A DNA stretch of 64,000 nt from Phaeosaccion multiseriatum (taxonomy: Eukaryota > Protista > Ochrophyta, other classes): positions 2,108,001 through 2,172,000 of the forward strand of contig OZ218951.1 of assembly GCA_965112735.1 (NCBI GenBank). The letters are read 5' to 3'. Made by a program: the position numbers and the translations under genes. The notes below the pieces were generated by a model. The model did no database searches and was not told the origin of the DNA. It saw nothing but the letters and a program-made list of their open reading frames with translations. Below are positions 1,992-58,356 of this stretch, piece by piece; the stretch's first letter is position 1, and every line of letters starts with the position of its first letter.

Positions 1992-4821
1992 GGGCACTTC
2001 CACAATCGCTGCTCTGCCCCAGCTTCCAAAGCTCGTAACTTTTGGCCAGAAAGGTGTACGAAGGTGTGTGGTGGGTCAGAATCTGCGCAAGGATGCCCTC
2101 TACAAGAAGAGCTGTCGTCCGGTTCGCAGCACTGCCGAGAAACGAAGGGCGAGGGAGAAAAGGGGGGTTGGGAGAAATATTGAAAACACTAAAAGTAATA
2201 TTTATGTCAATTAAAAGCACTAAAAGTAAAATTTCTGTAAAATTTATGTCAATTATATCATGATTGCAGCGTCTGGAGCGGCCGGGGGCGGGCTAGAGAG
2301 GACAGCAGGGGTGGCGGAGGTGTTGGGGGTGCCGAAGGCTCTACAACGGGCGCCACAGGCTGCTCCGCGGGTGCTTCGCGGGACGCAAGGTGCGCCAACA
2401 GGAGCTCCACCAGCCCCTGCTTGAGGGTCCGTTTCGGGTACTTAATCCCTTCCCGTGCGCAGCAAGACTCCAACGTAGGCCAGTTCATCGCGAGTACACT
2501 GGCCCGAGTGAGAAGCGGGCCCTGGGCTCCCACTATAGACCGGTACAGGTACACAAGCTTTGGCTCCCCCCCAAACAGGTCGCCTTGCCCATTCTTCGCG
2601 GCGAAGCACTCCCCGTACTTGCCCTTGCTGCAGGGGGTGCAGCTACAGCTCATCGTGCGAACATGAAGTGGGTACGCAACATCATAGTCCTGGCCTTGAT
2701 GGAACGCTTCAATCGTGGCCTCCGAAACGAAGCCACCCTTCTCCACATCGCCCTCGTAGTGGTATATACTCTGGGTGCCCTGGATGCCCTTGATGGTCAC
2801 GTCCTCCCGCTGAATGCTGCCGGCGGCAATAAACCTCACACGGGTCATCCGGGCTGTAAAAGGTGTCCAGCGCTTTCCAAAGTACTCTTCGTCCGACATT
2901 GGCTGGGCGGTGGTGTCAAACATCTCAGTCACGAAGGTCTCAAAGTCCTTCGCCGAGTTCATCACCCTCTCCCCCATGTCCGTCCTCCTCGATGCCATGG
3001 CCTTGATGGTACCCCCAAGCCCATCGTGGGGCCCCTTACCATGCGAGGTGGTGTGGAACATGTGCGTCATCTTCACCCCCCACAACTTGAGACAGGAGGC
3101 AACGAAGGCGAAGTTCTTTGCGCCCTTGTACTGCTTGGCGCATCCGTCAGTGACGTTGATCCACTCCTCCAGCTTGAGGCCGTGCTTTTCGAAGTATCCC
3201 TTGTACTGCTGATGCATGAGGCTGGAGCAGTGCTCATGGAAGGCTTGGTCTTGAAGGTCGTCGGAGATGAAAATCTGAGCGTGCACGTCATGGACGGGCT
3301 TCTCCCCCCCCCACATCCTGGGGTTGCAGTGCACGTAGCAAATCATGAGCGTCGCGGACGGACATGTGCCACAGGTCACAGAGAACGCGCCTGATGAAAG
3401 CGAGAGCAGGAGAGAAACACACGAATACATTAGGAAAGGAAACGAGGGAGCAGGGGAGGGGGGAGAGGAGGGAGGAAGGGTGGGGGGAGGACGGGAGGGG
3501 AGAGAAGTGAGCGCCCCTCTTGCTCTGACGTACCGCTGAGCTTATGCTTCTCCGAAAAGTCCATCCCCATTATGATCTGATGGGGCTTGAGTCGCTTCAG
3601 ACTCACCTCGGCAGCAAGCCTCTGCACCTTCGTCGCGACATGATACCGGATGTACTTCTGCCGGAGGTACTGCTCGGCCCTCCTAAAGACCTCGGCCACA
3701 GTCATCTCCACAAGCACGTTCTGCCGGTCGTGCTTCTTCCCTTCTGCTGTCACCACTGGCGCCCACTCTTTCACCTGCACCGTGTGCGTGTAGTTTCTGT
3801 CGCTGTACTCACAATGGGGGATACCCTTCACGCCGGCTTTGCAGTCGTCACAGGCTCCCTTCACACAAGCCGCCTTGTAGGTGCACAGCCCGTAGTGAAG
3901 CGCAGCAAGCTCGGCGTCGCCCTCGTAGTACTCCACCTGGTTGCAGAAGAAAGGCTTTGCTCCTGCTGCTGTGCTGCTGCGTCACCCCCTGCTCCGCTTC
4001 TCAGGCTGCATCTCGGCCTCGCCGTTTCTAGGGCTTTGCGCTTCTCCGCAAGACCCTCTGCTTTCTTGCTTGCTACCTCTTGCCTCTCCCTCGCCTCCGC
4101 AGCTTCTCCGCTTTTCTTTACGGCCTCTGTGAAGAGCATGTCGGCCGTATCCTCAGCTGGACCCTCCTTCCCCCAATCGCCATCTCGGAGCTTCCTCTTC
4201 TTCGCTGGGGACTCTGATACACCCTTGGGAAAGTAAGACTTGGACCCCTTCACCAGCGAAGCCCACCGATGCTTTATCCCGCTCCTCTTTGCCGGCGGCG
4301 TCTTGATCTTGGCCTGTTCCATTCGTTCCGTAAGAAGTTCATCCTCCGTCTCTTGGACGTGCTCCTTAGAGCACACGCGGCCATAGCGCTTCTGCTCCTT
4401 CCTGGCTCCACTGGGTGCGACAGTCAGTGTCACGCTTGTCTTCTTGCCGCAGGGCGTTTCTGCATGCTTGAAAGTACATCGATCCAGGTACCGGAGGTGG
4501 TGAGGACGCTCCGGAGTGGCCATTTCAATTTTCGCTTGGAGGGCGTTTTTACAGCTGAAGATGATCAGTAGGAGAAAGGTCACAGAGAGCATTCTTAAAG
4601 CCCTAAGCACGCTGCATCCAGTGATGTGCTTGCAGTGCGCTATCGACGCTGTCCTCCCTGTTTTCTCATCCAGATTTCCCACTTCCCCGCCATGGATTTG
4701 AATTTGCAGATCATGACCGTGACCGGCATACCCCTAAACATAGGGGTAGCCGCGAGCTTGTAACGTAAATCGCATCGAAACCGGTGTAGATCCGAAAATC
4801 GATGCGATTGTGGAAGTGGCC
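1992..4821 (-). mobile_element. Sola-like (probably Sola2-type) DNA transposon, apparently full length
   Basis: Left end GGGCACTTCCACAATCGC (1992-2009) and right end GCGATTGTGGAAGTGGCC (4804-4821) are inverted, with 1 mismatch. CTTG flanks both ends (1988-1991, 4822-4825); 2-bp TT or 6-bp CCTTGG are alternative readings. Internal DDD-type transposase. Subterminal hairpins at ~4730-4749 and ~4768-4809. Confidence 0.75.
2258..4523 (-). CDS. DDD transposase (Sola-like), spliced
   Basis: Motifs MDFSEK, VTDGCAKQYK and HGKGPHDGLGG supply three catalytic Asp. SCSCTPC Cys motif and a SAP/HeH-like C-terminal helix pair (LESCCAREGI...KQGLVELL). Intron 3391-3533 (GTACGT...TCATCAG) joins the 3430..3936 and 2258..3430 ORFs in frame. 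The junction near 3937 is either an intron (acceptor-like ctttcttctgcaaccag) or a frameshift. Start at MATPERP (4523) is inferred. Confidence 0.75.
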
Positions 4822-4930: not shown

Positions 4931-7307
4931 ATGGCGCAGCAGGCAACTACAACGCCCGAGGTACGACCTAGCGCCCTCTTGGAGGACGACTCTGTGCTTC
5001 AGAGAGAAATGCGCAAAGCGAGAGGGGGGAGTTCGAATGGTAGACACGATAGCTGCGGAAGGACGATTAGCTGCGGAAGGACGCTCCCGAAGTTGTGAGC
5101 AGCGCCCCCTTTTGAAGTTGGGACGCTTACGTAACGCTCCCGAAGTTGTGAGCAGCTTGCCCTCTTTTGAGGCACAGTACGCAGTAGCAAGACGACTGGA
5201 GAGAAAGAAGGGAGGGGGGGTCATTCTGCGGATACGATAGCTGCGCTGGGAAGCTCGCGTGTCGACCTATGAGCCGCTCTCCGTTGATCCCTTTTTGTCC
5301 GGTTTATGCGCCCTCTCCCCCCTTAACTCCTTTCCCTCCACAACACCAGGCGCGGCGACTCGGACAGGCTCTGGCAAGGGGAGATAGCTTCCTCACTGTG
5401 AGAGCGCTGATTAGGAAGCTCATCGCCAAGCACGGCAAAGCGAGTTTGGATCAGCCTATCGATGAAGAGGGCTATTCGTCTGCACTCTGCGCTTCAAGAT
5501 ACGGTCGACTGGATGTCGTGGACCTTCTGTTGCGGGAAGGGGCCTCCTTCAGAACCAGAGGCGGGCCCTTTGGAGACACGGCGTTGATATGCGCTGCCTG
5601 CAGCGGGCACGATCAGGTGGTGAGGCGGCTGTTGGACATTGGAGCCCCTGTGGACCAAGCGAGTGACGCAGGAGTTACTCCCTTGCTTGCAACCTCAATT
5701 GATGGGCACTCCACGATAGTGCAGCAGCTGCTCTCGGCGCGTGCTAGTGTCGACTTGGCCGACAAGCAGGGGATTTCTCCGATTTGGATGGCCTCTCAGA
5801 ACGGGCATGGCTCTGTTGTAAGGCTCCTGATCTCAGCCCAAGCGGATGTGAACCACGCAAGTAATCGCGGGGCTACTCCGCTTCTGCAGGCATCACTCAA
5901 TGGGCATGCGGGCATTGTACAGCAGCTCATCAGGGCTCACGCCATCATCGACAAGGCTGACCCCGAAGGTGCCACAGCTCTTCACATTGCCTCTCAACGT
6001 GGAGACGACGCCGTGGTGGAGAAGCTTCTCTGTGCGGGAGCACAGGTGGACAAATGGACCACCACCGGCAAATCACCCCTTCTTCTTGCCGCCCAGAATG
6101 GGCACGAGGCCGTCGTCGCTCGTCTCATCTCTGCGGGACCCCCCATCGACAAGGCTGACCCCAAAGGTTTCACTGTTCTTCACATTGCCTGTCAGGAAGG
6201 GCACGACGCCGTGGTGGAGAAGCTTCTCTGTGCGGGAGCACGTGTGGACAAAGAGGCCAACAATGGCGCAACACCCCTCATGCTTGCCGCGGAGGGTGGG
6301 CACGAGGTCGTCGTCGCTCGTCTCATCTCTGCGGCACCCCCCATCGACAAGACTGAACTCAACGGTGTCACTGCTCTTCACTTTGCCTCTCAACATGGAC
6401 ACGACGCCGTGGTGGAGAAGCTTCTCTCTGTGGGAGCGCGTGTGGACAAAGTGACCAACAATGGCGCAACACCGCTCATACTTGCCGCGAACAATGGGCA
6501 CGAGGCCGTCGTCGCCCGTCTCATCTCTGCGGGACCCCCCATCGACAAGGCTAACCCCGGAGGTTTCGTCTCATCTCTGCGGGACCCCCCATCGACAAGG
6601 CTAACCCCGGAGGTTTCACAGCTCTTCACCTTGCCTGTCAGGAAGGGCACGACGCCGTGGTGGAGAAGCTTCTCTTTGCGGGAGCACGTGTGGACAAAGG
6701 GGCCAACAATGGCGCAACACCCCTTCTTCTTGCCGCGTGGGATGGGCACGAGGCCGTCGTCGCTCGTCTCATCTCTGCGGGACCCCCTATCGACAAGGCT
6801 GGCCCCAAAGGTTTCACTGCTCTTCACGCTGCCTGTCAGGAAGGGCACGACGCCGTGGTGGAGAAGCTTCTCTGTGCGGGAGCACGTGTGGACAAAGAGG
6901 CCAACACTGGCGCAACACCCCTCCTCCTTGCCGCGCAGCATGGGCACGAGGCCGTCGTCGCTCGTCTCATCTCTGTGGCATCCCCCATGGATGCCTCAAG
7001 AGTAGACATTATTTCCCCGCTGGTTGCCGCTATCTGCAGTGATCAGCACATCATTGCGCGGCAGCTCCTCTCGGCCGGTGCTTCGGTGGACAAGGCCTTG
7101 GCTGGGGCACGGTGGTTTCTGCTCGGCCGGGACATCGAGCAGCGACTTATGGAGGCGGCAGCAGCCTTCTTCCGGTCCCAAACCGCGCTGGACCTCATGC
7201 GAAGGACGGATAAGACCTTCGGCAAGGAGAGCGGAATCCTGCCGCTGGAGAGGCCCGGGCGGGTGCAGAGCGAGACGTGGGAGAGCGTGGCGGAGGAGAT
7301 GAGCTGA
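4931..7307 (+). pseudogene. Ankyrin-repeat protein family A copy 2, frameshifted by a 50-bp tandem duplication
   Basis: Exon 1 4931-4960 (MAQQATTTPE|gtacga). Exon 2 from 5350 (caccag|ARRLGQAL). 6517-6566 is duplicated at 6567-6616, shifting the frame between the 5269..7005 and 6657..7307 ORFs. This is the longest repeat array of the copies. Confidence 0.8.
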
Positions 7308-8272: not shown

Positions 8273-8985
8273 TCACCAGCTGCATCGCGAAGGAGAAGGC
8301 GAAGGGAGGAGGACAGATGTGAGACAGCGTGGAAGCATATACTCAGCCAGTCCCCACTTGCACCACCAGCACTCACCCTCCCCACTTGCCCCACTTGCCC
8401 CACTTGCCCCATCCCCATCCGCCCCATCCGCCCCAGTGGTAGCTGTTATCGCCAGGGGTAAAGGATGCCCAAGAAGTTGAGCGGGGGGGGGCGCACACGA
8501 TCCGGGTCGATGGCGGCGGAGTCAATTGGATCCGAGTAGATGAGGAGCGCGGAGTGGTAAGGGAAAGACGGTGAGAGACAGACAGTAAGCAGGTGTGAGC
8601 GATGTAGGGAGACGTCACTTACAGTTTGCGTCCCCTCTGGTGGCCTTCGCCTCGAGAGCCGTAGCTCCTGTAGCGGAGCGGCGCCCGGAGTGAAGGTGAA
8701 GAGCGACGGGGGAGGGACGAAGGGCGGAACGGAGGCGGCAGGGGCAAAAGCGAGCGTACAATATATGTCGAGCGGAGCGTGAGGCAGAGAAGAGGTGTGC
8801 GAGAGCCGAGAAGAGGAGAGCGGAGCGAGTGTAGAGGACGTGCACGGGCACAAGCAGGCAAGATCCGATCCTTGAACTTACAGCTTGCGGGCCGGCTTGT
8901 CCTTGATGGTGTCGGGGACTTCGGCGGCGCCGGAGAGCACTGCCACGAAGAGCAGGGCGAAGAGAGTGAGGATGACGCGAGTCAT
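8273..8985 (-). CDS. Secreted RxL-delimited peptide precursor, Trp/Gly/Lys-rich (4 micro-exons)
   Basis: Exons 8985-8882, 8667-8623, 8442-8377, 8279-8273. Donors GTAAGT/GTAAGT/GTGAGT, CAG acceptors, all introns phase 2. Product: MTRVILTLFALLFVAVLSGAAEVPDTIKDKPARKL-SYGSRGEGHQRGRKL-YHWGGWGGWGWGKWGKWGKWGGW*. Confidence 0.8.
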
Positions 8986-9280
8986 GGTGCTTTGCTGGTA
9001 GTCTTGCGGCAGTAGCGAGGCCTGAGGCAACTGTGGTTGTGAGCAAGGCAGAGAAAAACAAAAAAAAATGCACCCCTCCTGGAGCCCTTTTTTTGGACCA
9101 CCCCCCTTGATAAGTGATCGTGACAACCCGTGCCAAGATTTGCAGGTGTATGGGTATGACCAGAGGGTTGTCCGGGGCAGGTGGTCAGGCGGGAAGGCAG
9201 CGGACGAGGTTCCTTTGCACACTGGGTAGGAAGCGCTGGGCCCCACGCGTGCTGGTGGCGATGACGCACAGGCTGGGCGC

Positions 9281-11430: not shown

Positions 11431-11657
11431 TAGATGTGCGGACGGCACAAGTGGCCCACTCGCAGTCTGCACAGCCTGGTACATGCAAAGCAAAAACCCG
11501 CCTCTGTGCTCATCCCGCTCATCAAATTTGGGTCTTTGCAGGACGGCCTTTGCAATCAAGAATACTATCATCCAAAGGGCTCCAAGAGCGTTGCCCGTGT
11601 CACACAACACAACAACACAGGAGCTATCTCGCAGGACCCAACCCACGCAAGCCCACC

Positions 11658-12841
11658 ATGAACCTCTCTCTCTTCGCTCTCTTCACCCTGCTCCTTGTCG
11701 CAGTGCTCTCCAGCGCCGCCCGAGTCCCTGACACCTTCCCCGAGGCCCGCGAACTGCAGGAGTAAGTTCCATGAGCATCGAAAGGGGGGAAGATCTTTTG
11801 CCCCGCTCTTGTCGCCTCATTCGAACACACCTGCTCTTGAGCCCGCTGTCCCTCCTCTGCCTCGCAACCCCCCGACTCATTGCCCGCCTCCGTGCGCTTC
11901 TCTCCCCCTCCTCCTCTCTTGACATCCGCCTCCACCGCCTCCACTCCCCCGGGCTCGCGCTTCGTCCTCTCCTGTGACGTTTCCTCTCCATCGACCTCAC
12001 GGACTGCGCCAACAATAGCGACGGAAACGATGAAGATGACTTCGGGGATAATGGCGACCGCCGCGCCCGCAAACTGTAAGCCCCCAAGTGAACTTGCATG
12101 CTCAAGCGGAGTCTTCTTCTCCTCACTCTACTCTCTTCTCTCCACTGCTCCTCTCTTCTCGGCCCTGCGGGTCACACCGCGGACCGGGCTTCTATCAACT
12201 TCGGTCTTCACTTGTATCGACAACAGCCAAGCATCGCCCACACCTGCGCCCTCTGGCAACCGCCGCGCCCGCAAGCTGCAGGAGTAAGTTCCCCCCTCGC
12301 GCCCTCTTTGCGTCCCTCCCTGGGTTTCTCTCTCCGTCCCCTCCTCTCCCGGCTTTACACTTGCCTTCTTCTTGACACCTTCCTCTCCGCCCCTACCCTT
12401 ACGCTTCTTCCCTCTCCTGTCCTATCTCCATCGCGCGCCATCTGCACACCATCGTCGCGTCGTGTCAGGAACGGAGACGAAGAAGATGACTTCGGGGATG
12501 ATGGCGATGAAGATGGCTTAGGGGATGATCGCGACCGCCACGCCCGCAAACTGTAAGCCCCCAAGTGAACTGCATGCTCAAGCGGAGTCTTCTTCTCCTC
12601 ACTCTACTCTCTTCTCTCCACTTCTCCTCTCTTCTCGGCCCTGCGCTTCACACCGCGGACCGGGCTTCTATGGCTTCTATCAACTTCGGTCTTCATTTAC
12701 ATCGACAACAGCCAAGCATCACCCACACCTGCGCCCTCTACGTAAGTTCCAGCTCGGCGTTTTCCGCTCTTCTTTTTGCTTACTCCACCTCCGTATCGTA
12801 GTCCTTCTTTTCGCTGCAGAGGAGCCGACTGCCGCAACTGA
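11658..12841 (+). CDS. Secreted RxL-delimited peptide precursor, acidic/Pro-rich (6 micro-exons)
   Basis: Exons 11658-11761, 12019-12075, 12227-12283, 12469-12552, 12712-12741, 12820-12841. All donors GTAAG, all introns phase 2. Product: MNLSLFALFTLLLVAVLSSAARVPDTFPEAREL-QDDGNDEDDFGDNGDRRARKL-QASPTPAPSGNRRARKL-QENGDEEDDFGDDGDEDGLGDDRDRHARKL-QASPTPAPSTGADCRN*. Confidence 0.85.
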
Positions 12842-13689
12842 GCGATGTCCTTCTTCAAGGCGTGCAAGCTTTGGTCAAGCTGTTTGGTGGGAACTCCGTG
12901 GGAGAGCTCCGTGCGTTGTCAGCGTAGGGCAGAGGGCACGGGAGATTTAACAATTTATGCTTGATAAGTCCAACCTCGTCACCTCGGTATGCTTCTTACA
13001 TCTTGGGCGGAGAACGACGAAAGTTCGTGTAGCACGAAGGCATGCAGGGCGGTGCTGTCGCTGTGGCTACTGCCCCTGCTTCTCCTCGTGCTGGAACCGC
13101 TTCGGCTCCGGGTCGTGGAGGTGCTCGCTTGCTGTCGCCCTCGTCGCCACTCCTGGAGTCGGAAAGGGCAGCCGCCTCAGTTGGGGTGGCGAGGGGGCAG
13201 TGGCGCCGGCGGCCTCCTCGCTGCTGACGTACTCGGGCTCCTGCCCCTCGGCCCACGCTCCCCTTCCCTGGTCATCGACCTGCAGATCCACATGGATGGG
13301 AGGTGGTGCCTGGTCGAGGCAATTGTGGTAGCTTGTAGAGGAAATCGACGGCGGACGGTAGTAGCTATGTGAGTATGCATCTCACAGCCGAACAAAGTGT
13401 GGTGGATCTCGAGAGAACCGATGGGGGCCCGTTAGAGTACTGCACCACAGACTAAGTGTCCGTAGTGGTGCCTCCGATTAACCTTGCTCCAAGGAGTTGA
13501 CGCCTAAGAGGTACCTATCTCGATCTGTCTCAGGTAAAGAACTAAGGGGAGAGGAGGGGATGTGGGACACGGGCCCGTTACTTTTGGCAACGGCACTCAT
13601 ACCTATACGTGAAGGTCTTACGGACCCTTCCTCTCCCTACTAGCCCCCGGGAGAGAATGTTCCTGCTGCTAGATGGCACAGTAAGCGGC

Positions 13690-15600
13690 CTAGGCCTAGA
13701 CACCTCTAGGCCTATAGGTGGGATGGAGCCGAAGTGAGGGAGTGAGGGGGGTGAGTGAGGGAGTGAGTGAGGGAAGGATGGAGTGCTGTGTGAGTGAGAG
13801 AGGGGGGAGTAGTGAGGGTGGGGAGTGAGTGAAGGCTTGGGTGCGTGCGTGCGTGCGTGAGTGAGAGTGAGTGCGTGCGGGAGTGATTGGGTACGCGAGG
13901 GACTGAGGGAGTGAGGGGGGTCTGCCAGGAAGTGAGGGAGTGAGGGAGTAAAAGCGTGACGGAGGGAGGGTGGGAGGGAGGGAGGGAAGGAGGGAGGGGA
14001 GTGGGTGAGTGAGTGAGGGGGGGGAGATGGATGGAGGGAGGGAGGGAGGGAGGGAGGGAGGGAGGGAGAGAGGGAGGGAGGGAGGGAGGGAGGGAGGGAG
14101 GGAGGGAGGGAGGGAGGGAGGGAGGGAGGGAGGGAGGGAGGGAGGGAGGGAGGGAGGGAGGGAGGGAGGGAGGGAGGGAGGGAGGGAGGGAGGGAGGGAG
14201 GGAGGGAGGGAGGGAGGGAGGGAGGGAGGGAGGGAGGGAGGGAGGGAGGGAGGGAGGGAGGGAGGGAGGGAGGGAGGGAGGGAGGGAGGGAGGGAGGGAG
14301 GGAGGGAGGGAGGGAGGGAGGGAGGGAGGGAGGGAGGGAGGGAGGGAGGGAGGGAGGGAGGGAGGGAGGGAGGGAGGGAGGGAGGGAGGGAGGGAGGGAG
14401 GGAGGGAGGGAGGGAGGGAGGGAGGGAGGGAGGGAGGGAGGGAGGGAGGGAGGGAGGGAGGGAGGGAGGGAGGGAGGGAGGGAGGGAGGGAGGGAGGGAG
14501 GGAGGGAGGGAGGGAGGGAGGGAGGGAGGGAGGGAGGGAGGGAGGGAGGGAGGGAGGGAGGGAGGGAGGGAGGGAGGGAGGGAGGGAGGGAGGGAGGGAG
14601 GGAGGGAGGGAGGGAGGGAGGGAGGGAGGGAGGAGGGAGGGAGGGAGGGAGGGAGGGAGGGAGGGAGGGAGGGAGGGAGGGAGGGAGGGAGGAAAGGAGG
14701 AAGGGAGAGGGGAGGGAAGATGGAGGGAGAGACGGAGGAGGGAGTGAGGGAGTGAATGAGTGAGTGACACCTCTGGGCCTATAGTGGGGATGGAGCCGGA
14801 GTGAGGGAGTGAGGGGGATGCGTGAGGGAGTGAGGGGGTGGGTGAGGGAAGGATGGAGTGCTGCATGAGTGAGAGAGGGGTGAGTAGTGAGGTTGGGGAG
14901 TGAGTGAGGGCTTGGGTGCGTGCGTGCGGGAGTGATTGGGTGGGCGAGGGACTGAGGGAGTGAGGGAGGTCTGCCAGGAAGTGAGGGATTGAGGGAGTAA
15001 AAGCGTGACGGAGGGAGGGTGGGAGGAAGGGAGGGAGGGGAGTGGGTGAGTAGGTGAGGGAGGGAGGGAGGGAGGGAGGGAGGGAGGGAGGGAGGGAGGG
15101 AGGAGAGAGGGAGGGAGGGAGAGAGGGAGGGCGGGAGAGAGGGAGGGAGGGAGGGAGCGAGGGAGGGAGGGAGGGAGGGAGGGCGGGAGGGAGGGAAGGA
15201 GGGAGGAGAGGGAGGGAGGGAGGGATGGAGGGGGGGAGGGAGGGAGGGAGAGACGGGAGTGAGTGAGTGAATGAGTGAATGAATGAGTGAGTGAGTGAGT
15301 GAGTGAGTGAGTGAGTGAGTGAGTGGGTGAGTGAGTGAGTGAGTGAGTGAGTGAGTGAGTGAGTGAGTGATGGAGGGAGGGAGGGAGGGCGGGAGGGAGG
15401 GAAGGAAGGGAGGGAGGGAGGAAGGAGGAAGGGAGAGAGGGAGGGAAGAGGGAGAGACGGAGGAGGGAGTGAGGAAGTGAATGAGTGAGTGCGTGCATGC
15501 GAGCGTGCGAGTGCGTGCGTCCGTGTGTCTCGCGTGAGTGAGTGAGTGAGGAGTGGGTGAGTGAGTGCTGGAAAGCGTGCGTGTTTGTGTGAGTGGGTGA
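13690..15600. repeat. Compound (GGAG)n/(GAGT)n microsatellite block with an internal ~1.07 kb direct duplication
   Basis: Near-pure GGAG run ~14035-14690. gacacctct(a/g)ggcctatag..gggatggagccg heads two similar segments at ~13700 and ~14766. Confidence 0.9.
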
Positions 15601-17718: not shown

Positions 17719-19234
17719 ATGGCGCAGCAGGCAACTTTTACGCCCGAGGTACGGATGTAGCGTCCTGCCTCCGATAAGGTGGTATCATTTTTAAAATAGG
17801 AGAGATGGGTATGAAGCTGCGAAGCTCGCGTGTCGACCTATGAGCCGCTCTCCGTTGATCCCTTTTTGTCCGGTTTATGCGCCCTCTCCCCCCTTAACTC
17901 CTTTCCCTCCACAACACCAGGCGCGGCGACTCGGACAGGCTCTGGCAAGGGGAGATAGCTTCCTCACTGTGAGAGCGCTGATTGGGAAGCTCATCGCCAA
18001 GCACGGCAAAGCGAGTTTGGATCAGCCTATCGATGAAGAGGGCTATTCGTCTGCACTCTGCGCTTCAAGATACGGTCGACTGGATGTCGTGGACCTTCTG
18101 TTGCGGGAAGGGGCCTCCTTCAGAACCAGAGGCGGGCCCTTTGGAGACACGCCGTTGATAGGCGCTGCCGGCAACGGACACGATCAGGTGGTGAGGCGGC
18201 TGTTGGTTATTGGAGCCCCTTTCGACGAAGCGAATGACGCAGGAGTTACTCCCTTGATGGCAGCCTCAGGTAGAGGGCACTCAACGATAGTGCAGCGGCT
18301 GCTTTCGGCGCGCGCTAGTGTCGACTTGGCGGAGAAGCAGGGGTTTTCTCCGATTTGGATGGCCGCTCACAACGGGCATGGCTCTGTTGTAAGGCTCCTC
18401 ATCTCAGCCCAAGCGGATGTGAACCACGCAGATAATCTCGGGGCTACTCCGCTTCTGCAGGCATCGACCTATGGGCGTGCGGGAATTGTACAGCAGCTCA
18501 TCAGGGCTCACGCCATCATCGACAAGGCTGACCACGAAGATTTCACTGCTCTTCACCTTGCCTCTCAATATGGACACGACGCCGTGGTGGAGAAGCTTCT
18601 CTGTGCGGGAGCACAGGTAGACAAATGGACCACCACCGGTAATTCATCCCTCATCCTTGCCGCGCAGAATGGGCACGAGGCCGTCGTCGCTCGTCTGATC
18701 TCTGCGGGATCCCCCATCGACAAGGCTGACCCCGAAGGTTTCACTGCTCTTCATATCGCCTCTCAAGATGGACACGACGCCGTGGTGGAGAAGCTTCTCT
18801 GTGCGGGAGCACAGGTGGACAAAGGGGCCAACAATGGCGCAACACCCCTCGAACTTGCCGCGCTGAATGGGCACGAGGCCGTCGTCGCTCGTCTCATCTC
18901 TGTGGGATCCCCCGTGGATGCCTCAAGAGTAAACGTCCCTTCCCCGCTGGTTGCCGCTATCTGCAGGGATCAGCACAGCATTGTGCGGCAGCTCCTCTCG
19001 GCCGGTGCTTCGGTGGACAAGGCGTTGGCTGGGGCACGGCGGTGTCAGTTCGGCCTCGGCATCGAGCAGCGACTTATGGAGGCAGCAGCAGCCTTCTTCC
19101 GGTCCCAAACCGCGCTGGACCTCATGCGAAGGACGGATAAGACCTTCGGCAAGGAGAGCGGAATCCTGCCGCTGGAGAGGCCCGGGGGGGTGCAGAGCGA
19201 GACGTGGGAGAGCATGGCGGAGGAGATGGGCTGA
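17719..19234 (+). CDS. Ankyrin-repeat protein family A copy 3 (intact)
   Basis: Exon 1 17719-17748 (MAQQATFTPE|gtacgg). Exon 2 17921-19234 is open throughout. Fewer repeats than copy 2. Confidence 0.88.
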
Positions 19235-20298: not shown

Positions 20299-21014
20299 TC
20301 ACCAGCTGCATCGCGAAGGAGAAGGCGAAGAGAGGAGGACAGATGTGAGACAGCGTGGAAGCATATACTCAGCCAGTCCCCACTTGCCCCACCAGCACTC
20401 ACCCTCCCCACTTGCCCCACTTGCCCCACTTGCCCCACTTGCCCCATCCGCCCCATCCGCCCCAGTGGTAGCTGTTATCGCCAGGGGTAAAGGATGCCCA
20501 AGAAGTTGAGCGGGGGGGGGCGCACACGATCCGGGTCGATGGCGGCGGAGTCAATTGGATCCGAGTAGATGAGGAGCGCGGAGTGGTAAGGGAAAGACGG
20601 TGAGAGACAGACAGTAAGCAGGTGTGAGCGATGTAGGGAGACGTCACTTACAGTTTGCGTCCCCTCTGGTGGCCTTCGCCTCGAGAGCCGTAGCTCCTGT
20701 AGCGGAGCGGCGCCCGGAGTGAAGGTGAAGAGCGACGGGGGAGGGACGAAGGGCGGAACGGAGGCGGCAGGGGCAAAAGCGAGCGTACAACATATGTCGA
20801 GCGGAGCGTGAGGCAGAGAAGAGGTGTGCGAGAGCCGAGAAGAGGAGAGCGGAGCGAGTGTAGAGGACGTGCACGGGCACAAGCAGGCAAGATCCGATCC
20901 TTGAACTTACAGCTTGCGGGCCGGCTTGTCCTTGATGGTGTCGGGGACTTCGGCGGCGCCGGAGAGCACTGCCACGAAGAGCAGGGCGAAGAGAGTGAGG
21001 ATGACGCGAGTCAT
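20299..21014 (-). CDS. Trp/Gly/Lys-rich RxL peptide precursor, copy 2
   Basis: Same four-exon structure as 8273-8985. Terminal peptide [24 protein letters not shown], with one more Lys-Trp-Gly unit and frame preserved. Confidence 0.8.
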
Positions 21015-23694: not shown

Positions 23695-25353
23695 ATGAAC
23701 CTCTCTCTCTTCACTCTCTTCACCCTGCTCCTTGTCGCAGTGCTCTCCAGCGCCGCCCGAGTCCCTGACACCTTCTCCGAGGCCCGCGAACTGCAGGAGT
23801 AAGTTCCATGAGCATCAAAAGGGGGGAAGATCTTTTGCCCCGCTCTTGTCGCCTCATTCGAACACACCTGCGCTTGAGCCCGCTGTCCCTCCTCTGCCTC
23901 GCAACCCCCCGACTCATTGCCCGCCTCCGTGCGCTTCTCCCCCCCTCCTCCTCTCTTGACATCCGCCTCCACCGCCTCCACTCCCCCGGGCTCGCGCTTC
24001 GTCCTCTCCTGTGACGTTTCTTCTCCATCGACCTCACGGACTGCGCCAACAATAGCGACGGAAACGATGAAGATGACTTCGGGGATAATGGCGACCGCCG
24101 CGCCCGCAAACTGTAAGCCCCCAAGTGAACTTGCATGCTCAAGCGGAGTCTTCTTCTCCTCACTCTACTCTCTTCTCTCCACTGCTCCTCTCTTCTCGGC
24201 CCTGCGGGTCACACCGCGGACCGGGCTTCTATCAACTTCGGTCTTCACTTATATCGACAACAGCCAAGCATCGCCCACACCTGCGCCCTCTGGCAACCGC
24301 CGCGCCCGCAAGCTGCAGGAGTAAGTTTCCCCCTCGCGCCCTCTTTGCGTCCCTCCCTGGGTTTCTCTCTCCGTCCCCCCTCTCCCGGCTTTACACTTGC
24401 CGGCGTCTTGACATCTTCCTCTCCGCCCCTCTCCTCGCGCTTCGTCCCTCTCCTATTCATTCTCCATCGCGCGCCATCTGCACACCATCGTCGCGTCGTG
24501 TCAGGGACGGAGACGAAGAAGATGACTTCGGGGATGATGGCGATGAAGATGACTTCGGGGATGATCGCGACCGCCGCGCCCGCAAACTGTAAGCCGCCAA
24601 GTGAACTTCATGCTCAAGCGAAGTCTTCTTCTCCTCACTCTACTCTCTTCTCTCCACTTCTCCTCCCTTCTCGGCCCTGCGCTTCACACCGCGGACCGGG
24701 CTTCTATCAACTTCGGTCTTCACTTGTATCGACAACAGCCAAGCATCGCCCACACCTGCGCCCTCTGGCAACCGCCGCGCCCGCAAGCTGCAGGAGTAAG
24801 TTCCCCCCTCGCGCCCTCTTTGCGTCCCTCCCTGGGTTTCTCTCTCCGTCCCCTCCTCTCCCGGCTTTACACTTGCCTTCTTCTTGACACCTTCCTCTCC
24901 GCCCCTACCCTTACGCTTCTTCCCTCTCCTGTCCTATCTCCATCGCGCGCCATCTGCACACCATCGTCGCGTCGTGTCAGGAACGGAGACGAAGAAGATG
25001 ACTTCGGGGATGATGGCGATGAAGATGGCTTAGGGGATGATCGCGACCGCCACGCCCGCAAACTGTAAGCCCCCAAGTGAACTGCATGCTCAAGCGGAGT
25101 CTTCTTCTCCTCACTCTACTCTCTTCTCTCCACTTCTCCTCTCTTCTCGGCCCTGCGCTTCACACCGCGGACCGGGCTTCTATGGCTTCTATCAACTTCG
25201 GTCTTCATTTACATCGACAACAGCCAAGCATCACCCACACCTGCGCCCTCTACGTAAGTTCCAGCTCGGCGTTTTCCGCTCTTCTTTTTGCTTACTCCAC
25301 CTCCGTATCGTAGTCCTTCTTTTCGCTGCAGAGGAGCCGACTGCCGCAACTGA
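23695..25353 (+). CDS. Acidic/Pro-rich RxL peptide precursor, copy 2 (8 micro-exons)
   Basis: Exons 23695-23798, 24056-24112, 24264-24320, 24505-24588, 24739-24795, 24981-25064, 25224-25253, 25332-25353. One extra acidic + Pro-rich exon pair (EDGDEEDDFGDDGDEDDFGDDRDRRARKL, QASPTPAPSGNRRARKL) relative to copy 1. Confidence 0.85.
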
Positions 25354-26199
25354 GCGATGTCCTTCTTCAAGGCGTGCAAGCTTTGGTCAAGCTGTTTGGT
25401 GGGAACTCCGTGGGAGAGCTCCGTGCGTTGTCAGCGTAGGGCAGAGGGCACGGGAGATTTAACAATTTATGCTTGATAAGTCCAACCTCGTCACCTCGGT
25501 ATGCTTCTTACATCTTGGGCGGAGAACGACGAAAGTTCGTGTAGCACGAAGGCATGCAGGGCGGTGCTGTCGCTGTGGCTACTGCCCCTGCTTCTCCTCG
25601 TGCTGGAACCGCTTCGGCTCCGGGTCGTGGAGGTGCTCGCTTGCTGTCGCCCTCGTCGCCACTCCTGGAGTCGGAAAGGGCAGCCGCCTCAGTTGGGGTG
25701 GCGAGGGGGCAGTGGCGCCGGCGGCCTCCTCGCTGCTGACGTACTCGGGCTCCTGCCCCTCGGCCCACGCTCCCCTTCCCTGGTCATCGACCTGCAGATC
25801 CACATGGATGGGAGGTGGTGCCTGGTCGAGGCAATTGTGGTAGCTTGTAGAGGAAATCGACGGCGGACGGTAGTAGCTATGTGAGTATGCATCTCACAGC
25901 CGAACAAAGTGTGGTGGATCTCGAGAGAACCGATGGGGGCCCGTTAGAGTACTGCACCACAGACTAAGTGTCCGTAGTGGTGCCTCCGATTAACCTTGCT
26001 CCAAGGAGTTGACGCCTAAGAGGTACCTATCTCGATCTGTCTCAGGTAAAGAACTAAGGGGAGAGGAGGGGATGTGGGACACGGGCCCGTTACTTTTGGC
26101 AACGGCACTCATACCTATACGTGAAGGTCTTACGGACCCTTCCTCTCCCTACTAGCCCCCGGGAGAGAATGTTCCTGCTGCTAGATGGCACAGTAAGCG

Positions 26200-28270
26200 G
26201 CCTAGGCCTAGACACCTCTAGGCCTATAGGTGGGATGGAGCCGAAGTGAGGGAGTGAGGGGGGTGAGTGAGGGAGTGAGTGAGGGAAGGATGGAGTGCTG
26301 TGTGAGTGAGAGAGGGGGGAGTAGTGAGGGTGGGGAGTGAGTGAAGGCTTGGGTGCGTGCGTGCGTGCGTGAGTGAGAGTGAGTGCGTGCGGGAGTGATT
26401 GGGTACGCGAGGGACTGAGGGAGTGAGGGGGGTCTGCCAGGAAGTGAGGGAGTGAGGGAGTAAAAGCGTGACGGAGGGAGGGTGGGAGGGAGGGAGGGAG
26501 GGAGGGAGGGAGTGGGTGAGTGAGTGAGGGGGGGGAGATGGATGGAGGGAGGGAGGGAGGGAGGGAGGGAGGGAGGGAGAGAGGGAGGGAGGGAGGGAGG
26601 GAGGGAGGGAGGGAGGGAGGGAGGGAGGGAGGGAGGGAGGGAGGGAGGGAGGGAGGGAGGGAGGGAGGGAGGGAGGGAGGGAGGGAGGGAGGGAGGGAGG
26701 GAGGGAGGGAGGGAGGGAGGGAGGGAGGGAGGGAGGGAGGGAGGGAGGGAGGGAGGGAGGGAGGGAGGGAGGGAGGGAGGGAGGGAGGGAGGGAGGGAGG
26801 GAGGGAGGGAGGGAGGGAGGGAGGGAGGGAGGGAGGGAGGGAGGGAGGGAGGGAGGGAGGGAGGGAGGGAGGGAGGGAGGGAGGGAGGGAGGGAGGGAGG
26901 GAGGGAGGGAGGGAGGGAGGGAGGGAGGGAGGGAGGGAGGGAGGGAGGGAGGGAGGGAGGGAGGGAGGGAGGGAGGGAGAGAGGGAGGGAGGGAGGGAGG
27001 GAGGGAGGGAGGGAGGGAGGGAGGGAGGGAGGGAGGGAGGGAGGGAGGGAGGGAGGGAGGGAGGGAGGGAGGGAGGGAGGAAGGGAGGGAGGGAGGGAAC
27101 GGATGAGGGAGGCAGGCAGGCAGGGAGGGAGGAAGGGAGGGACAGAGGTAGGGACGGAGGGAGGGAGGGAGGGAGGGAGGGAGGGAGGGAGGGAGGGAGG
27201 GAGGGAGGGAGGGAGGGAGGGAGGGAGGGAGGGAGGGAGGGAGGGAGGGAGGGAGGGAGGGAGGGAGGGAGGGAGGGAGGGAGGGAGGGAGAGAGGGAGG
27301 GAGGGAGGGAGGGAGGGAGGGAGGGAGGGAGGGAGGGAGGAAAGGAGGAAGGGAGAGGGGAGGGAAGATGGAGGGAGAGACGGAGGAGGGAGTGAATGAG
27401 TGAGTGACACCTCTGGGCCTATAGTGGGGATGGAGCCGGAGTGAGGGAGTGAGGGGGATGCGTGAGGGAGTGAGGGGGTGGGTGAGGGAAGGATGGAGTG
27501 CTGCATGAGTGACAGAGGGGTGAGTAGTGAGGTTGGGGAGTGAGTGAGGGCTTGGGTGCGTGCGTGCGGGAGTGATTGGGTGGGCGAGGGACTGAGGGAG
27601 TGAGGGAGGTCTGCCAGGAAGTGAGGGATTGAGGGAGTAAAAGCGTGACGGAGGGAGGGTGGGAGGAAGGGAGGGAGGGGAGTGGGTGAGTAGGTGAGGG
27701 AGGGAGGGAGGGAGGGAGGGAGGGAGGGAGGGAGGGAGGGAGGGAGGGAGGGAGGGAGGGAGGGAGGGAGGGAGGGAGGGAGGGAGGGAGGGAGGGAGGG
27801 AGGGAGGGAGGGAGGGAGGGAGGGAGGGAGGGAGGGAGGGAGGGAGGGAGGGAGGGAGGGAGGGAGGGAGGGAGGGAGGGAGGGAGGGAGGGAGGGATGG
27901 AGGGGGGGAGGGAGGGAGGGAGAGACGGGAGTGAGTGAGTGAATGAGTGAATGAATGAGTGAGTGAGTGAGTGAGTGAGTGAGTGAGTGAGTGGGTGAGT
28001 GAGTGAGTGAGTGAGTGAGTGAGTGAGTGAGTGAGTGATGGAGGGAGGGAGGGAGGGCGGGAGGGAGGGAAGGAAGGGAGGGAGGGAGGAAGGAGGAAGG
28101 GAGAGAGGGAGGGAAGAGGGAGAGACGGAGGAGGGAGTGAGGAAGTGAATGAGTGAGTGCGTGCATGCGAGCGTGCGAGTGCGTGCGTCCGTGTGTCTCG
28201 CGTGAGTGAGTGAGTGAGGAGTGGGTGAGTGAGTGCTGGAAAGCGTGCGTGTTTGTGTGAGTGGGTGAGG
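26200..28270. repeat. Compound (GGAG)n/(GAGT)n microsatellite block, copy 2
   Basis: Same layout as 13690-15600, with different tract lengths. Confidence 0.9.
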
Positions 28271-30499: not shown

Positions 30500-31017
30500 A
30501 TGGCGCAGCAGGCAACTTTAACGCCCGAGGTACGGATGTAGCGTCCTGCCTCCGATAAGGTGGTATGCGATACGATAGCTGCGCTGGGAAGCTCACGTGT
30601 CGAGTAGTGAGCAGCTCCCCGTTGATCCCTTTTTGTCCGGTTTATGCGCCTCTCCCCCCTAAACTCGTTTCCCTCAACCCCAGGCGCGGCGACTCGGGCA
30701 GGCTCTGGAAAGAGGAGATAGCTTCCTCACTGTGAGAGCGCTGATTGGGAAGCTCATCGCCAAGCACGGCAAAGCCAGTTTGGATCAGCCTATCAATGAA
30801 GAGGGCGATTCGTCTGCACTCTGCGCTTCAAGATACGGTCGGCTGGATGTCTTGGACCTTCTGCTGCGAGAAGGGGCCTCCTTCAGAACCAGAGGCGGGC
30901 CCTTTGGAGACACGCCGTTGATAGGCGCTGCCTGCAACGGGCACGATCAGGTGGTGAGGCGGCTGTTGGACATTGGAGCCCCTGTCGACGAAGCGAATGA
31001 CGCAGGAGCTACTCCCT
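30500..31017 (+). pseudogene. Ankyrin family A copy 4, 3'-truncated at the array breakpoint
   Basis: Exon 1 30500-30529 (MAQQATLTPE). Exon 2 from 30684. Homology ends after DAGATP. The frame then runs antisense into the ORC2 3' end to a stop at 31367. Confidence 0.8.
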
Positions 31018-31094
31018 TCGCCCGTTCGCCGAGGGTCGTTAGGCGCCTCGCCGTCCTTCGCGGCCTCGCGTCTCAGCCCCTCAGGGCCTCTCCA

Positions 31095-34000
31095 TCACAA
31101 CTGCCGATACGCCAAGATGCGCTCCAGCACCTCTCTCGAGTGCGGCACCGAAATTCTCCATCCGCTGAGCACCTTGGCCGCCGCTACCGCCCCTCCAGAA
31201 ACCTTGCGGGCCGCCCAACTACCACGGCGAGGAGCCGTCGAAGAAGACGAGGAGGGCCCCCCGCCTGGCAAGCTGTGGCGCTTCACCTCCACAAAGCTGT
31301 GGTCTTTGAGCTCAACGAGGGCCTTGTCCAGCTGGTGGTTCTGACTCAGCGTACCGTTGCGACGTAGCCGCGCCAAGAGGACTTCCTGATCCACCCCGGG
31401 GAGGCCTTGCTCATCATCCTCGTCTTCATCCCCACCACCTCCTCCTGCTGCTGCTGATGATGCTGCTGCTGCTCCTCCTTCGCCGTGTCCCTTGCGGTTG
31501 CCCAGGCCTACCGCCCCCCCCGCCCCCACCGTGCTCGCCGTGGTGCTCCTTTGCTTGCGATCCTCCCTCTCCACCGCCATCCTGGCAATGGTCTGGAGTA
31601 CCTCAATGTGCCGGGGCGTGAGCGACTGCAGCACGTACTCCAGCCCTTGTGCAGAAGACGCACCACCCTTCCACCTCCCCCCCTTGCCAGCCACACCGTT
31701 CCCCTTCAGCCCACCGCCCTTGGACCCCGCTGTGTCGCCCTCGACCTCTGCGTCGTACGGTGCAAAGGTTGCCGCTTCTTGCCACACAAAGTCAAAGAAT
31801 CCTCGGTGCTGCCCGTTGAGCTCCCCCTTCAGCCGGCCCCCCACCTGATCCTCCTCCTCCTCCTCCTCCTTCTGCTGTCGCTGCTGCTGTATCACCAACT
31901 TCTGCTGATGGTACTGATGTTGAACATTCCCCTTACCCTCTGCACCCGCAGGACCCGGCGACCCCAGCCTTTCACTCGTACTCCTTACCGATGATGCATG
32001 TCCTGGGTGTGCAGCCGACGACCCGCGGCTCTCACCATGACCGTAAGTTTGCCCTCCAAGCGCAGCGTACTCACCGGACTCGTTGCTATCGACACCTTCA
32101 CTGTTAAAGGCCGCCGAGGAAGGGCGGCCAACAATCTCTGCGTCCCACAGAAAGGCTGCATTGACGTGGTCCACAGAAGCAATGAGATGAATGTGCGGAC
32201 AGCAGGCGAGCCACGCCAGGGCCTCTTGGGAAGGGGCGTTGCGCAGTTTGCATCCGTCGATGTTGTGGACGACGAGGTAGAGATGGGAAGGGGCCGGCAG
32301 AGTAGAGAGGTTGGGAACCTTCTTGCTCTGTCAAGTAGCAGCAGAAGCAGCCGCGGTAGCACAGCAGTAGTGACAGAGTAGCAGCGGCAGTAGAAGGAAG
32401 AGAACACAGAGCCACCATAGCATGAACAGGGGGTGGGAGGGGGGTGGGAGGGGGGAGGGAGGGAGGGGAACAAATATAGTCAGGCTTACATGTCCTTCCC
32501 TCTCTCCTCTGGCCACTTTCAAAAGGGAGTGACCCATGCTGTTCGTTCCTATGTCAATACATGCTCTGAGACATACCGACCGACCTCACCCTCTCTCACC
32601 TTCGTGCTGTGCTCTCTCATGCCATCCGCCACCTGCCTGCGTATCGCCGACCTCGCCGCCGTAGCAGACGCGCGCTCAGGCTGAGAGGAGGAGGGGGGGG
32701 GAGGAGATGGAGGGATTCATAAGTGCTATGTAGGGGGTGGGAGTGCATCACTTTACCCCTCCCTCCTCCCCTCCTCCCCTCCTCCCGCCCTTCCCTCCCT
32801 CCATCCCTCCCTCCCTCCCTCCTCCCTCTCCTCCTCCCTTCCTCCACTCACCAGTACCCCGCCCACCCCCGCGCTACCGCCAACGCTGCTGCTTCCCCCT
32901 CCCCCGGTGCCAAGGGCCTTTCCGCCACCAGACGCCGCCGCTCGTGCCTGTCTGTAGGCCCCGTTGATGTTGAGAGCGTACTGCACAGGGTCGCTATCTG
33001 AGAGATCGGATCTACCCAGGACACGGTACGAGATGTCTGTGAAGAGAGGAGGGGAGGGGAGGGGAGGGGAGGGGAGGAGAGGGGAGAGGAGGGGAGGGGA
33101 GGGGAGAGGAGGGGAGGGGAGGGAAGGGGAGGGGAGGGGAGGGGAGGGAAGGGGAGGGGAGGGCAGGGCAGCAAGAATGAGGGCGGGAAGGGGGGAGGGG
33201 ACAGAGAGAGAGAGAGAGAGGGTTCCCTTCGACCTCGGATACCGCTACCGCCTATTCGGATACCCTACGTCTCGTACCGTCCAGCAGCGCCGCCACACTG
33301 GCCCACAGTTCGAACCCGAGAAACTCGTACACAGCGCCCCCGTCCCGACGCAGCTTCTGACGGACAAAGTCCTGCTCAGGTGCAGCAGTTGGTGATACAC
33401 GGGGCAGGAGCAGGGACAGGAGCAGAGTCAGGGTCAAGAGCAGGGTCAGGGGGTAGGTCGAGGGTGAGGGTGAGGGTGAGGGTGAGGGTCAAAGTCAGGG
33501 TCAGGGTCAGGGTCAGGGTCCGGGTCAGATGCAGGGCGAACGCGACAGCACAGCGGGAAGGACGATACATGCCTCCCATGCGGTCCACCTACCTGCAGGA
33601 GCTGCTTCTTGCTACCGAAGCCGTGCAGCAAAACGCTGTGCCCGCCCCCCGCCCCTTCTTCCCCTCCTCCCCCTCCTCCTCGCAGCAGGTGGTACCAATC
33701 GTCAAAGGCGCCCCCCGGCCGGGCGAAGCTCTGCCTGAGGGCGGTGAGGGCCCTTTGGTGGTGGTTGTCCTCGTTTTGCTGCTGCTTGGCCATGTCCAGG
33801 AGCTGACGCGGCCCGAGCGCCGCCAGAGACGATTGCCAAGCGGGAGGCACTGACGCCGTACCGCTGACGCCGCCTGCATTGGGGAGGGAAGGAGGAAGGA
33901 TGAAGGAGGGGGGGTGGGGGGGAAGGACAGGCGCAGAGAGTGTGTGAGACTGTGTGAGACTATGTGTGTGCGTGTGCGCGTGCGCGTGTGTGGTGCGTGT

Positions 34001-36025
34001 GCGTGCGCGGAAAGTGCAGAAAGCAACGAATGAAAGCACAAGCACCGGGTAATGGAGAGCCCCCCCCTGCACACATCCCAGAGGTTCGCTGTGTCGCGTT
34101 GACGCACCTTGCTCCCTCTTCCTCTTCATCGTCTTTCCCTTGCGCCCCTCGTCTTCCTCCCCGTCCCGCTCCTTCTCCTCGTCTGTGCTGCCGTCCTCGT
34201 CCTCCTCCTCCTCCTCCTCCTGCTCATCATCATCATCATCATCAGCGTCTTGCTCCGCTTGCTGCCCACGCCCTTTGCCTCCTCCTCCTCCCGCTGCTGC
34301 TGCTGCCCCCTTTCCCTTGGCCTTTCCGTATGCCTTTCCCTTCTGAGCTATGGCTTGCATGGCCTTCTTGGCAGCTCTCTCGTCGGCCTCTCGATCTTGC
34401 CTGCATACAAAGTAAGTGCGCGGGAAAGGGAAGGACGGGTATAGACCACGTTCGAGGTTGGGGATGGGAAGGTAGAGAGGGCGTGCACGTGATACATTCA
34501 TGCGTGCGTGCGTGCGTGCGTGCGTGCATGCATGCGTGTGTACGTATGTGCATACGTGCATATGTGCAAGCTTCGCCCAGACCCAAAAAGCAGCCCGACA
34601 AGACAAGCAGCAGAGTGCGGAGAAAGTCCACAAGTCGAAGCGCCTCGTCTCCTCTCCTCTTCCTCTTGCCAAGGAAGGGCTTTGTTCCAGCGCTCTGCCG
34701 GCCCTTCACCAAAACAACCGACTTTGACTGACTGACTGATTGAATGATGGAAAGCACTTCACTTCACTTTACTCACCTGTGCATAGACGCAATCTTGTTC
34801 CGCTTCTTCTTCTGAAACGCCTTCTTCTGTGCACCCCTTCCTCCTCCTCCTCCTCCTGCTGCTGCTGCTGCTGCCGCCGCTGCTACTCCTGACGCACTCG
34901 CAAGTGCCCCTACCTGGCTGCGCTTCGTTTGCCCACCGCTGCCGCCCAGAAAGTAGCACTGAGGAGAGAGATGGGGCGAGTGGGACAGGGCAAGGCAGAG
35001 CAGAGCACAGGAGAGCAAAGTGGACAACGCACGTCACAGGAGAGCCACAGCCAGAGAGAGAGAGTAAAAGGCGAGAGAGAGAGATGGAGAGAGAGAGTAA
35101 AAGGCGAGAGAGAGAGAGAGATGGAGAGAGAGAGAGAGACAGGAAGAGTGAGAACGACATGAGAACGAAATAGAGAGAGAGAGAGAATGCACACACTAGG
35201 TGAGCGTCCTCCTTCATCTGAGGGAGGACAGCGGGCGGCTCACTCGCTCCAAGGACGCGACGCACCACACAGCACAGACCACACGGCACACGACACACGG
35301 CAGGTGGGACTCACACACTTCACTCACTCACTCACTTACTCACTCTTTCATTCACTCACTCACTCACTCCTTCACACATTCACTTCTTCACTCCTTCACT
35401 CATTCAATCCTTCACTCACCGACGCCCCGTCTGGCAGCTGCGAGAAGGCCCGCTCATCGCTCTCTGTAGCAGCCGACCCACCGCCTCCCGCCCACCCCCC
35501 TTCCTCCTCCTCTCCACCAAAGTACGAGTCTCGGAAGGCCTCGATTGCGTCCATCTCCCTGTGGCGCTCGACCATGAGCGCCTCCTCCTCCTCCTCCTCC
35601 TCCTCCTCCTCTTCCTCCTCTTCATCCCCTTCCTTTTCCGCCTCCTCCTGCTCCTCCTCCTGCTGCCGCCCGACAACACAGCTAGCAGCAGCATCATCAG
35701 CACCGTCAAGAGTTGGTGATACAGAAGCATCAGCCGACTGCTGCCCTTCCCCCAAGACCGATGTCGATGCCGAGGCCTTCTTCCTCCTCTTGACGACGCT
35801 CCTCTCCATGTAGCGCGCGAAATGACTGCGCAGCGCCCCTGACGACTGCACGTGCTGCATCACAGCCGTCTCCGAGCGGAAAAAGTCGATACCCTCTCGC
35901 TTCCGCACGTCTTGCCACTTCTGGCCATGAGTCGGAGCTCGTGCGCAGTCAGCAGCAGCAGCAGCAGCAGCTCCTCCTCCTCTTCCTCCTCCTCCTCCTC
36001 CTCCTCCTCCTCCTCCTCCTGCTCC

Positions 36026-36088
<63 letters not shown>

Positions 36089-38743: not shown

Positions 38744-38973
38744 AATCTCTCTGATCCCTTCACAGAATGCACCCACCCCCCCCTTCTCCTTGTCCCAACA
38801 ACTACAAGGGAAGGAAGGCCAAGTCCCCCCCCCCCAAATCAATCCCAATTCCACTCTCTGGAGCACCAACATGCAAATCTCCTGAATCCCCACTGCTTCC
38901 CTTTATGGTTGGATTACAGGGGCACGCACAACAAGAAAGTAAAGTACATGCAGACACTGCCGGTAGGGCGGGG

Positions 38974-41902: not shown

Positions 41903-41934
<32 letters not shown>

Positions 41935-56200: not shown

Positions 56201-56431
56201 TGTTGTACTACAACGGACAGGTGTGAATGGGGCATGTATTGCTCGGGGGAGGGGCGGGGGGCTATTGCCTTAGGGCAGTGAAAGGAGGGGAGAGAGGGAG
56301 AGAGGGGAAGGAAGGAGGGAGGGAGAGAGGGGAGGAGGCTGCCTTCTTCTTCTTCGTCTTCGTCTTCCCGGTCCCTGCCACTGTCCTCTGCCCTGCTCTG
56401 CTCAGTCTCCTTGCATACGCGGCATGGTCAT

Positions 56432-56468
<37 letters not shown>

Positions 56469-56469
56469 A

Positions 56470-56523
<54 letters not shown>

Positions 56524-56979
56524 ACACGCACACACACACACACATACACACACACACATACACACACACACACATACACAGGGCGTGGGTCGGCAGGACC
56601 GCGACGAAGCAGCTCGATGGTTCACGCGCAGTGCGAGGCAAGGCTTCGCGTTGGGCTGCAATAACCTCGGCCTGTGTTATGAGGCAGGGCATGGAGTACC
56701 GAGGAAGGACTACAACAGGGCGGTGGACATGTACCGACAGGCCGTGGAGGGGGGCAGCGCACTCGCCATGGGCAATCTTGCTTACTTGCTCGCCAGGGAG
56801 GCGCTTCATACGCTTAGGTAGGGGGAATGGGGGTTGGGATGTGTATATTGACTTATGGCAATCAACTCTAAGACTTACGTAATTTTGTTGTGGGGGTGGG
56901 GACTATTACCTTGTCATGGCGCACCATTCACCCATACCCATATACCTACACGACCCCCCTTCCTTACGGTACTGTGATC

Positions 56980-57016
<37 letters not shown>

Positions 57017-58284: not shown

Positions 58285-58356
<72 letters not shown>

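Follow-up and report, generated by a model that had tools for sequence, protein, structure and literature searches.

The stretch from 11658 to 12841 on the forward strand of the window (the whole 64-kb stretch of Phaeosaccion multiseriatum DNA that was analysed) raises the question of whether a series of very short exons, missing from the list of open reading frames, forms a gene, and what its product would do. The sequence-only reading had proposed six exons separated by phase-2 introns with GTAAG...YAG boundaries, the internal ones being 57, 57, 84 and 30 nt long, which would encode a signal peptide and a series of secreted peptides. Joined computationally, these exons stay in frame and encode 117 amino acids followed by a stop codon. 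As that reading had observed, the list of open reading frames does not contain the gene, because the unspliced frame stops at the first donor.

Exon 1 (11658-11761; 104 nt) encodes a predicted signal peptide (approximately codons 1-21; the prediction is based on a best 12-residue mean hydropathy of 2.99), followed by a 12-residue propeptide ending in A-R-E-L and then by a Gln. Exon 2 (12019-12075; 57 nt) contains an acidic module with eight Asp/Glu residues and a basic spacer that ends inside the Leu codon of R-K-L. Exon 3 (12227-12283; 57 nt) encodes a Pro/Thr/Ser module, a basic spacer and L-Q, and exon 4 (12469-12552; 84 nt) a longer acidic module with 14 Asp/Glu residues in the predicted peptide, again ending inside the Leu codon of R-K-L. 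A second Pro/Thr/Ser module, without an RxL, is found in exon 5 (12712-12741; 30 nt), and the last coding exon (12820-12841; 22 nt) carries the stop codon, whose context is also found in the basic paralog described below. The proposal of one peptide per exon is therefore an approximation. The exon boundary falls within the Leu codon in exons 2 and 4 alone, while exons 1 and 3 extend past it to L-Q-(D/E), so that the Gln of the acidic peptides is encoded by the preceding exon; the last predicted peptide spans exons 5 and 6.

All five introns of this copy (copy A; 257, 151, 185, 159 and 78 nt) are in phase 2 and have GTAAG...YAG boundaries. GTAAG occurs five times within 11658-12841, each time at a modelled donor; the earlier description of exons with GTAAG donors is accurate for every donor, although six exons have five of them. 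The first four acceptors are immediately preceded by 175, 113, 178 and 122 AG-free bases, against a background of 3107 YAGs in the window, of which 1.9% have at least 100. The pyrimidine content of the introns is 65-77%, compared with 36-40% in the acidic exons. Thirty-one possible exon chains were computed, and every six-exon chain has identical first five exons. The last acceptor is ambiguous, at either 12801 or 12819 (18 nt apart in the same frame, a difference of six amino acids), and likeness to the last acceptor of the basic paralog favours 12819 as the probable site. The junction pattern CGCRANCTGTRAG, comprising the R-x-L codons and then the donor, is present nine times in the window, where 0.02 occurrences would be expected; these are paralogous copies, mostly recent duplicates, of which approximately three are independent. 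The splice signals of copy A exceed chance, and the locus is very probably a real gene. It appears to be a secreted, exon-modular and lineage-specific precursor, its secretion being predicted from the leader. Four sequencing runs contain the locus; they include no RNA, cover the introns and show no spliced joint. The four runs represent one sample, possibly the source of the assembly, and were assessed by contig placement with depth ignored.

The best clue to function is a divergent basic paralog that is absent from the sequence-only reading. It lies 2.7 kb upstream of copy A on the opposite strand (8273-8985), back to back with it, and its four exons (8882-8985, 8623-8667, 8377-8442 and 8273-8279) encode 73 amino acids. 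The leader is as in the acidic gene, and two R-K-L sites are located at phase-2 exon ends with a split Leu codon. Its final peptide, rich in Trp, Gly and Lys, comprises 23 amino acids, of which eight are Trp, with a net charge of +3. A second copy of the basic paralog (20299-21014, reverse strand) encodes 74 amino acids owing to one extra Lys codon. A 15-nt motif shared by the two genes, which is a candidate cis-element, is found 84 nt before the ATG of the acidic gene (11574-11588, forward strand) and 105 nt before that of the basic paralog (9076-9090, reverse strand).

Similarity between the acidic and basic genes is restricted to islands: the upstream 15-mer, the leader, the first donor, the 3′-end of intron 2 and the stop context. 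The remaining intron sequence can be aligned only with many gaps. Within the leader, 51 of 60 nucleotides are identical over codons 7-26, and 16 of the 34 residues of the leader exon are invariant; this island could stem from gene conversion. No codon-level sign of purifying selection was found in the leader (pS 0.22, pN 0.22). By sequence comparison, exon 3 combines, as a mosaic, the head of exon 5, the tail of exon 2 and the donor of exon 1. The simplest history would be an ancestor with four exons (leader, module with RKL, module and stop), with duplication occurring later in the acidic gene.

Copy B of the acidic gene is found approximately 12 kb downstream of copy A (23695-25353, forward strand). 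It has eight exons and encodes 164 amino acids, with one extra Pro/Thr exon and one extra acidic exon. The earlier suggestion that modules could be duplicated without loss of frame is borne out by this copy, and the unit of duplication is an exon pair, because copy B has gained one Pro/Thr and acidic exon pair; the duplicated cassette thus comprises two exons and 141 nt (six versus eight exons). Copies A and B show no differences between 12284-13600 and 24796-26112, a span that begins with intron 3 and continues for at least 759 nt beyond the stop codon, and their 5′ parts are 1-2% divergent. The identical 3′ parts point to a very recent crossover, conversion or assembly join. Copy B alleles are present in contigs from the raw data (positions 11780, 11984, 12214, 12470 and 12540). 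Indels in exons come in multiples of three (27 nt and 3 nt), while those in introns and intergenic regions are mostly otherwise. Among the exon copies of copies A and B, one of the 11 substitutions is synonymous and ten are non-synonymous, mostly swaps among D, N and E, with no significant difference from the neutral expectation (p 0.2-0.5).

The acidic/basic pair has been duplicated together as part of a tandem unit of approximately 12 kb, which also contains an ankyrin-repeat gene and a purine-rich microsatellite. The four ankyrin copies (1-978, 5269-7005, 17840-19234 and 30663-31364, all on the forward strand) contain internal repeats of approximately 198-201 nt, and the last copy is shortened; no signal peptide is evident in the ankyrin gene of this unit. 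Long purine-rich microsatellite blocks with a GC skew of 0.64-0.84 are located at 13700-15600, 26200-28200 and 50400-52300, the first two within the tandem unit. Between two of the ankyrin copies, reading frames on the reverse strand (2258-4682) are transposase-like, with an H-G-K-G-P-x-D-G motif, and have no Pfam match. Three imperfect direct repeats at 1667-1984 adjoin these frames.

The acidic and basic genes have six sites between them, each of which conforms to [AG]-R-[KE]-L, in agreement with the proposal that RxL is a common processing motif. The first site of the acidic gene (R-E-L) is at residues 31-33, and R-K-L of the paralog is at residues 33-35. As R-x-x-R occurs only in the three internal spacers of the acidic gene, and neither in its first site nor in the two sites of the paralog, R-x-L would be the processing signal shared by both genes. 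By analogy with known precursors, cleavage at RxL is likely. Predicted cutting after Leu would place Gln at all four new N-termini of the acidic gene, as had been claimed for every mature peptide, but the claim does not extend to the basic paralog, whose predicted peptides start with Ser and Tyr; pyroglutamate formation is consequently possible for the acidic gene only.

The earlier view that the family is undescribed agrees with exon-by-exon searches, which found no relatives, although such searches are not very sensitive when the pieces are short and of low complexity. A profile of the leader exon against 1.84 billion proteins returned four weak matches (E 1e-4 to 1e-3), none of which contains an RxL; three are repeat proteins and one is a generic signal peptide. 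A search with the exon 4 region gave no match, the ESM Atlas yielded no usable match for pieces of the acidic gene, and Pfam gave nothing above the cut-off for these pieces, including exon 4. The 16-nt junction pattern, which is too short for such a search, gave only chance matches in metagenomes, without exon similarity. A non-coding RNA array was rejected, as Rfam was negative. A thrombospondin type-3 or EF-hand calcium loop in exon 4 was also rejected, there being no Pfam match and DxDxDG being absent from the sister module of copy B.

In layout, the acidic gene resembles a diatom RXL precursor, but by sequence comparison it lies outside every named family. In diatom silaffin, cingulin, SAP and silicanin precursors, the signal peptide likewise precedes a short propeptide with RXL at its end (PMC5647440, PMC5525289); silaffins lose C-terminal RRIL/RRNL, and RXL ends the repeats of cingulins and silacidins (PMC4557024). 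The closest parallel drawn by the sequence-only reading was with silacidins. The silacidin precursor of Thalassiosira pseudonana resembles the acidic gene in its signal peptide, its repetitive RXL-spaced structure and its short peptides, which are rich in Asp/Glu and of comparable length (PMC4557024, PMC11733937). The comparison does not hold for composition, and membership was rejected: silacidins are Ser-rich phosphopeptides, approximately 60% phosphorylated, in which phosphoserine is essential for activity (PMC4557024), whereas the acidic modules contain no Ser or Thr. Unlike silacidins, they also alternate with Pro/Thr modules and are located on separate phase-2 exons. No sequence similarity to silacidins was found in exon-level searches, which have little power for such short, low-complexity pieces. 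The basic partner is basic and aromatic-rich, as are diatom RXL-domain proteins, but it is far smaller. Its membership of the cingulins or silaffins was rejected on the grounds that its Lys residues are spaced by W-G, its final peptide contains no Ser, and it lacks K(S/G)nK clusters, in which the Lys of cingulin-type proteins is grouped within Ser/Gly-rich regions (PMC9650480).

Outside the diatoms, oomycete RXLR and Plasmodium PEXEL proteins similarly have an R-x-L soon after the signal peptide that is cut after Leu in the secretory pathway. Cutting at PEXEL also acts on non-exported proteins (bioRxiv 10.1101/2023.07.12.548774). These proteins have one site and form one folded protein, whereas the acidic gene has four sites that would yield several short peptides, and no host-translocation context. 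An oomycete RXLR effector, in which R-x-L-R (with EER) precedes an effector domain, was rejected, since Leu is followed here by Q, S or Y and there is no downstream domain. In Ectocarpus, LRR (ROCO) and TPR genes also carry repeats on frame-symmetric exons that have been duplicated and shuffled (PMC3341825). There, the repeats together make up one folded intracellular binding domain, whereas the units of the acidic gene are predicted to be secreted and cut apart, and the duplicated unit is an exon pair.

The product of the acidic gene may well be a secreted, RxL-processed polyprotein whose polyanions pair in the extracellular matrix with the polycation of its neighbour. Judging from its hydropathy, the leader would direct the precursor into the ER, where a secretory-pathway protease of the RxL type, for which there is diatom, oomycete and apicomplexan precedent, could cut after Leu at the four R-[EK]-L sites. 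Basic spacers may then be trimmed as in silaffins, leaving Asp/Glu polyanions with charges of approximately -8 and -13, together with short Pro/Thr/Ser peptides that could be glycosylated or mere spacers. The back-to-back paralog, with the same leader and upstream motif, would supply a Trp/Gly/Lys polycation. Polyanion and polycation might be co-secreted and associate by charge, their most likely role being that of an organic component of wall, mucilage or adhesive; a matrix role together with the partner is thus tentatively suggested. Tandem duplication of the two-exon 141-nt cassette would tune the polyanion dose, the number of peptides in the acidic gene being tunable by frame-safe duplication of exon pairs.

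Alternatively, and this is unlikely, the pair could serve defence or signalling: the Trp/Gly/Lys peptide would be an active membrane binder, and the acidic peptides would either neutralise it or pack it into secretory granules, or would themselves be signals. Cationic peptides masked by acidic pro-pieces are known and count for this explanation, as do the small size of the cation (eight Trp in 23 amino acids), the variable ankyrin-repeat genes that share the tandem unit with the pair, and the almost entirely non-synonymous changes among exon copies. However, no signal peptide is evident in the neighbouring ankyrin gene, adjacency is no proof of function, the non-synonymous excess is not significant, and low-complexity repeated modules would fit a bulk material better than a ligand.

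It is quite unlikely that the peptides form a biomineral matrix in scales, cysts or wall, with polyanion and polycation acting like silacidin and polyamine or cingulin on silica, or with Asp-rich peptides acting on calcium carbonate. The order of signal, RXL propeptide and RXL-separated repeats is that of diatom precursors, and silica precipitation is itself a chemistry of polyanion plus polycation (PMC11733937). Against this, the acidic modules contain no Ser or Thr, whereas silacidins need phosphoserine for their activity (PMC4557024), and the partner has W-G-spaced Lys in place of the Ser/Gly-spaced K-x-x-K clusters of the cingulin kind (PMC9650480). RxL cutting also occurs in non-silicifying lineages; the oomycete RXLR is itself cut after Leu (PMC11754927), so that RxL is not a pointer to silica. 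No silica machinery was seen in the 64-kb window.

It is improbable that the precursor is cut in another manner, whether at the first RxL only, by a kexin/furin-type protease at R-x-x-R or dibasic sites, or by a site-1-type protease after R-x-L-x, yielding a polyampholyte or peptides with an N-terminal residue other than Gln. The internal spacers do hold R-R-A-R or R-H-A-R and dibasic pairs, and a second RXLR of Phytophthora, located within a structured region, remained uncut (PMC11754927). The first site and both paralog sites nevertheless keep R-x-L without R-x-x-R, and the precursor is low in complexity and probably unstructured throughout. That the gene is silent or decaying, or that it is a repeat spliced on paper only, is highly improbable: the missing transcript in four runs of one sample, the undetectable purifying selection and the unstable tandem region with its transposon-like ORF and truncated ankyrin copy would suit it, but frames, donors and long AG-free zones are preserved in four intact copies, which belong to two diverged genes, and chance would not produce this.

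The extracellular polyanion-polycation pair also admits a broader, rather doubtful version: a system of two genes built from exon cassettes in an alga other than a diatom, in which an ancestral four-exon chassis, with its upstream element, leader exon and stop exon in common, accepts interchangeable peptide cassettes in phase-2 slots at the P1 Leu, and a polyanion and a polycation encoded back to back are released by one RxL protease and together build up a wall, an adhesive or a material that templates mineral. RXL sites have been reported in biosilica proteins only (PMC5647440). A multi-site RxL polyprotein in another alga would suggest that stramenopiles use RxL generally as a maturation signal, and that the silica peptides of diatoms were built from it. 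The protease acting on diatom RXL domains is unknown (PMC5525289) and the diatom cleavage partly hypothetical (PMC5647440, PMC5525289); if true, the peptides described here would provide short, easy substrates for finding it. Such genes evade both ORF-based annotation and homology search.

Several other genes are found downstream of the tandem unit. An ORC2-like gene on the reverse strand (approximately 31095-34700; Pfam RecA-like_ORC2) contains long low-complexity insertions, and searches for relatives of its ORF gave nothing or distant fungal ORC2; the other genes of the window that were searched likewise yielded no close named relative. A 1165-aa open frame on the same strand (35396-38893), with no Pfam or Atlas match, carries several short modules of the W..GW/Y..P/F..E..V..H type among low-complexity tracts. 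On the forward strand, a second ankyrin gene (38767-44054) is unrelated to the ankyrin copies of the tandem unit, and a multi-exon SEL1-repeat gene is located at approximately 53700-59436.
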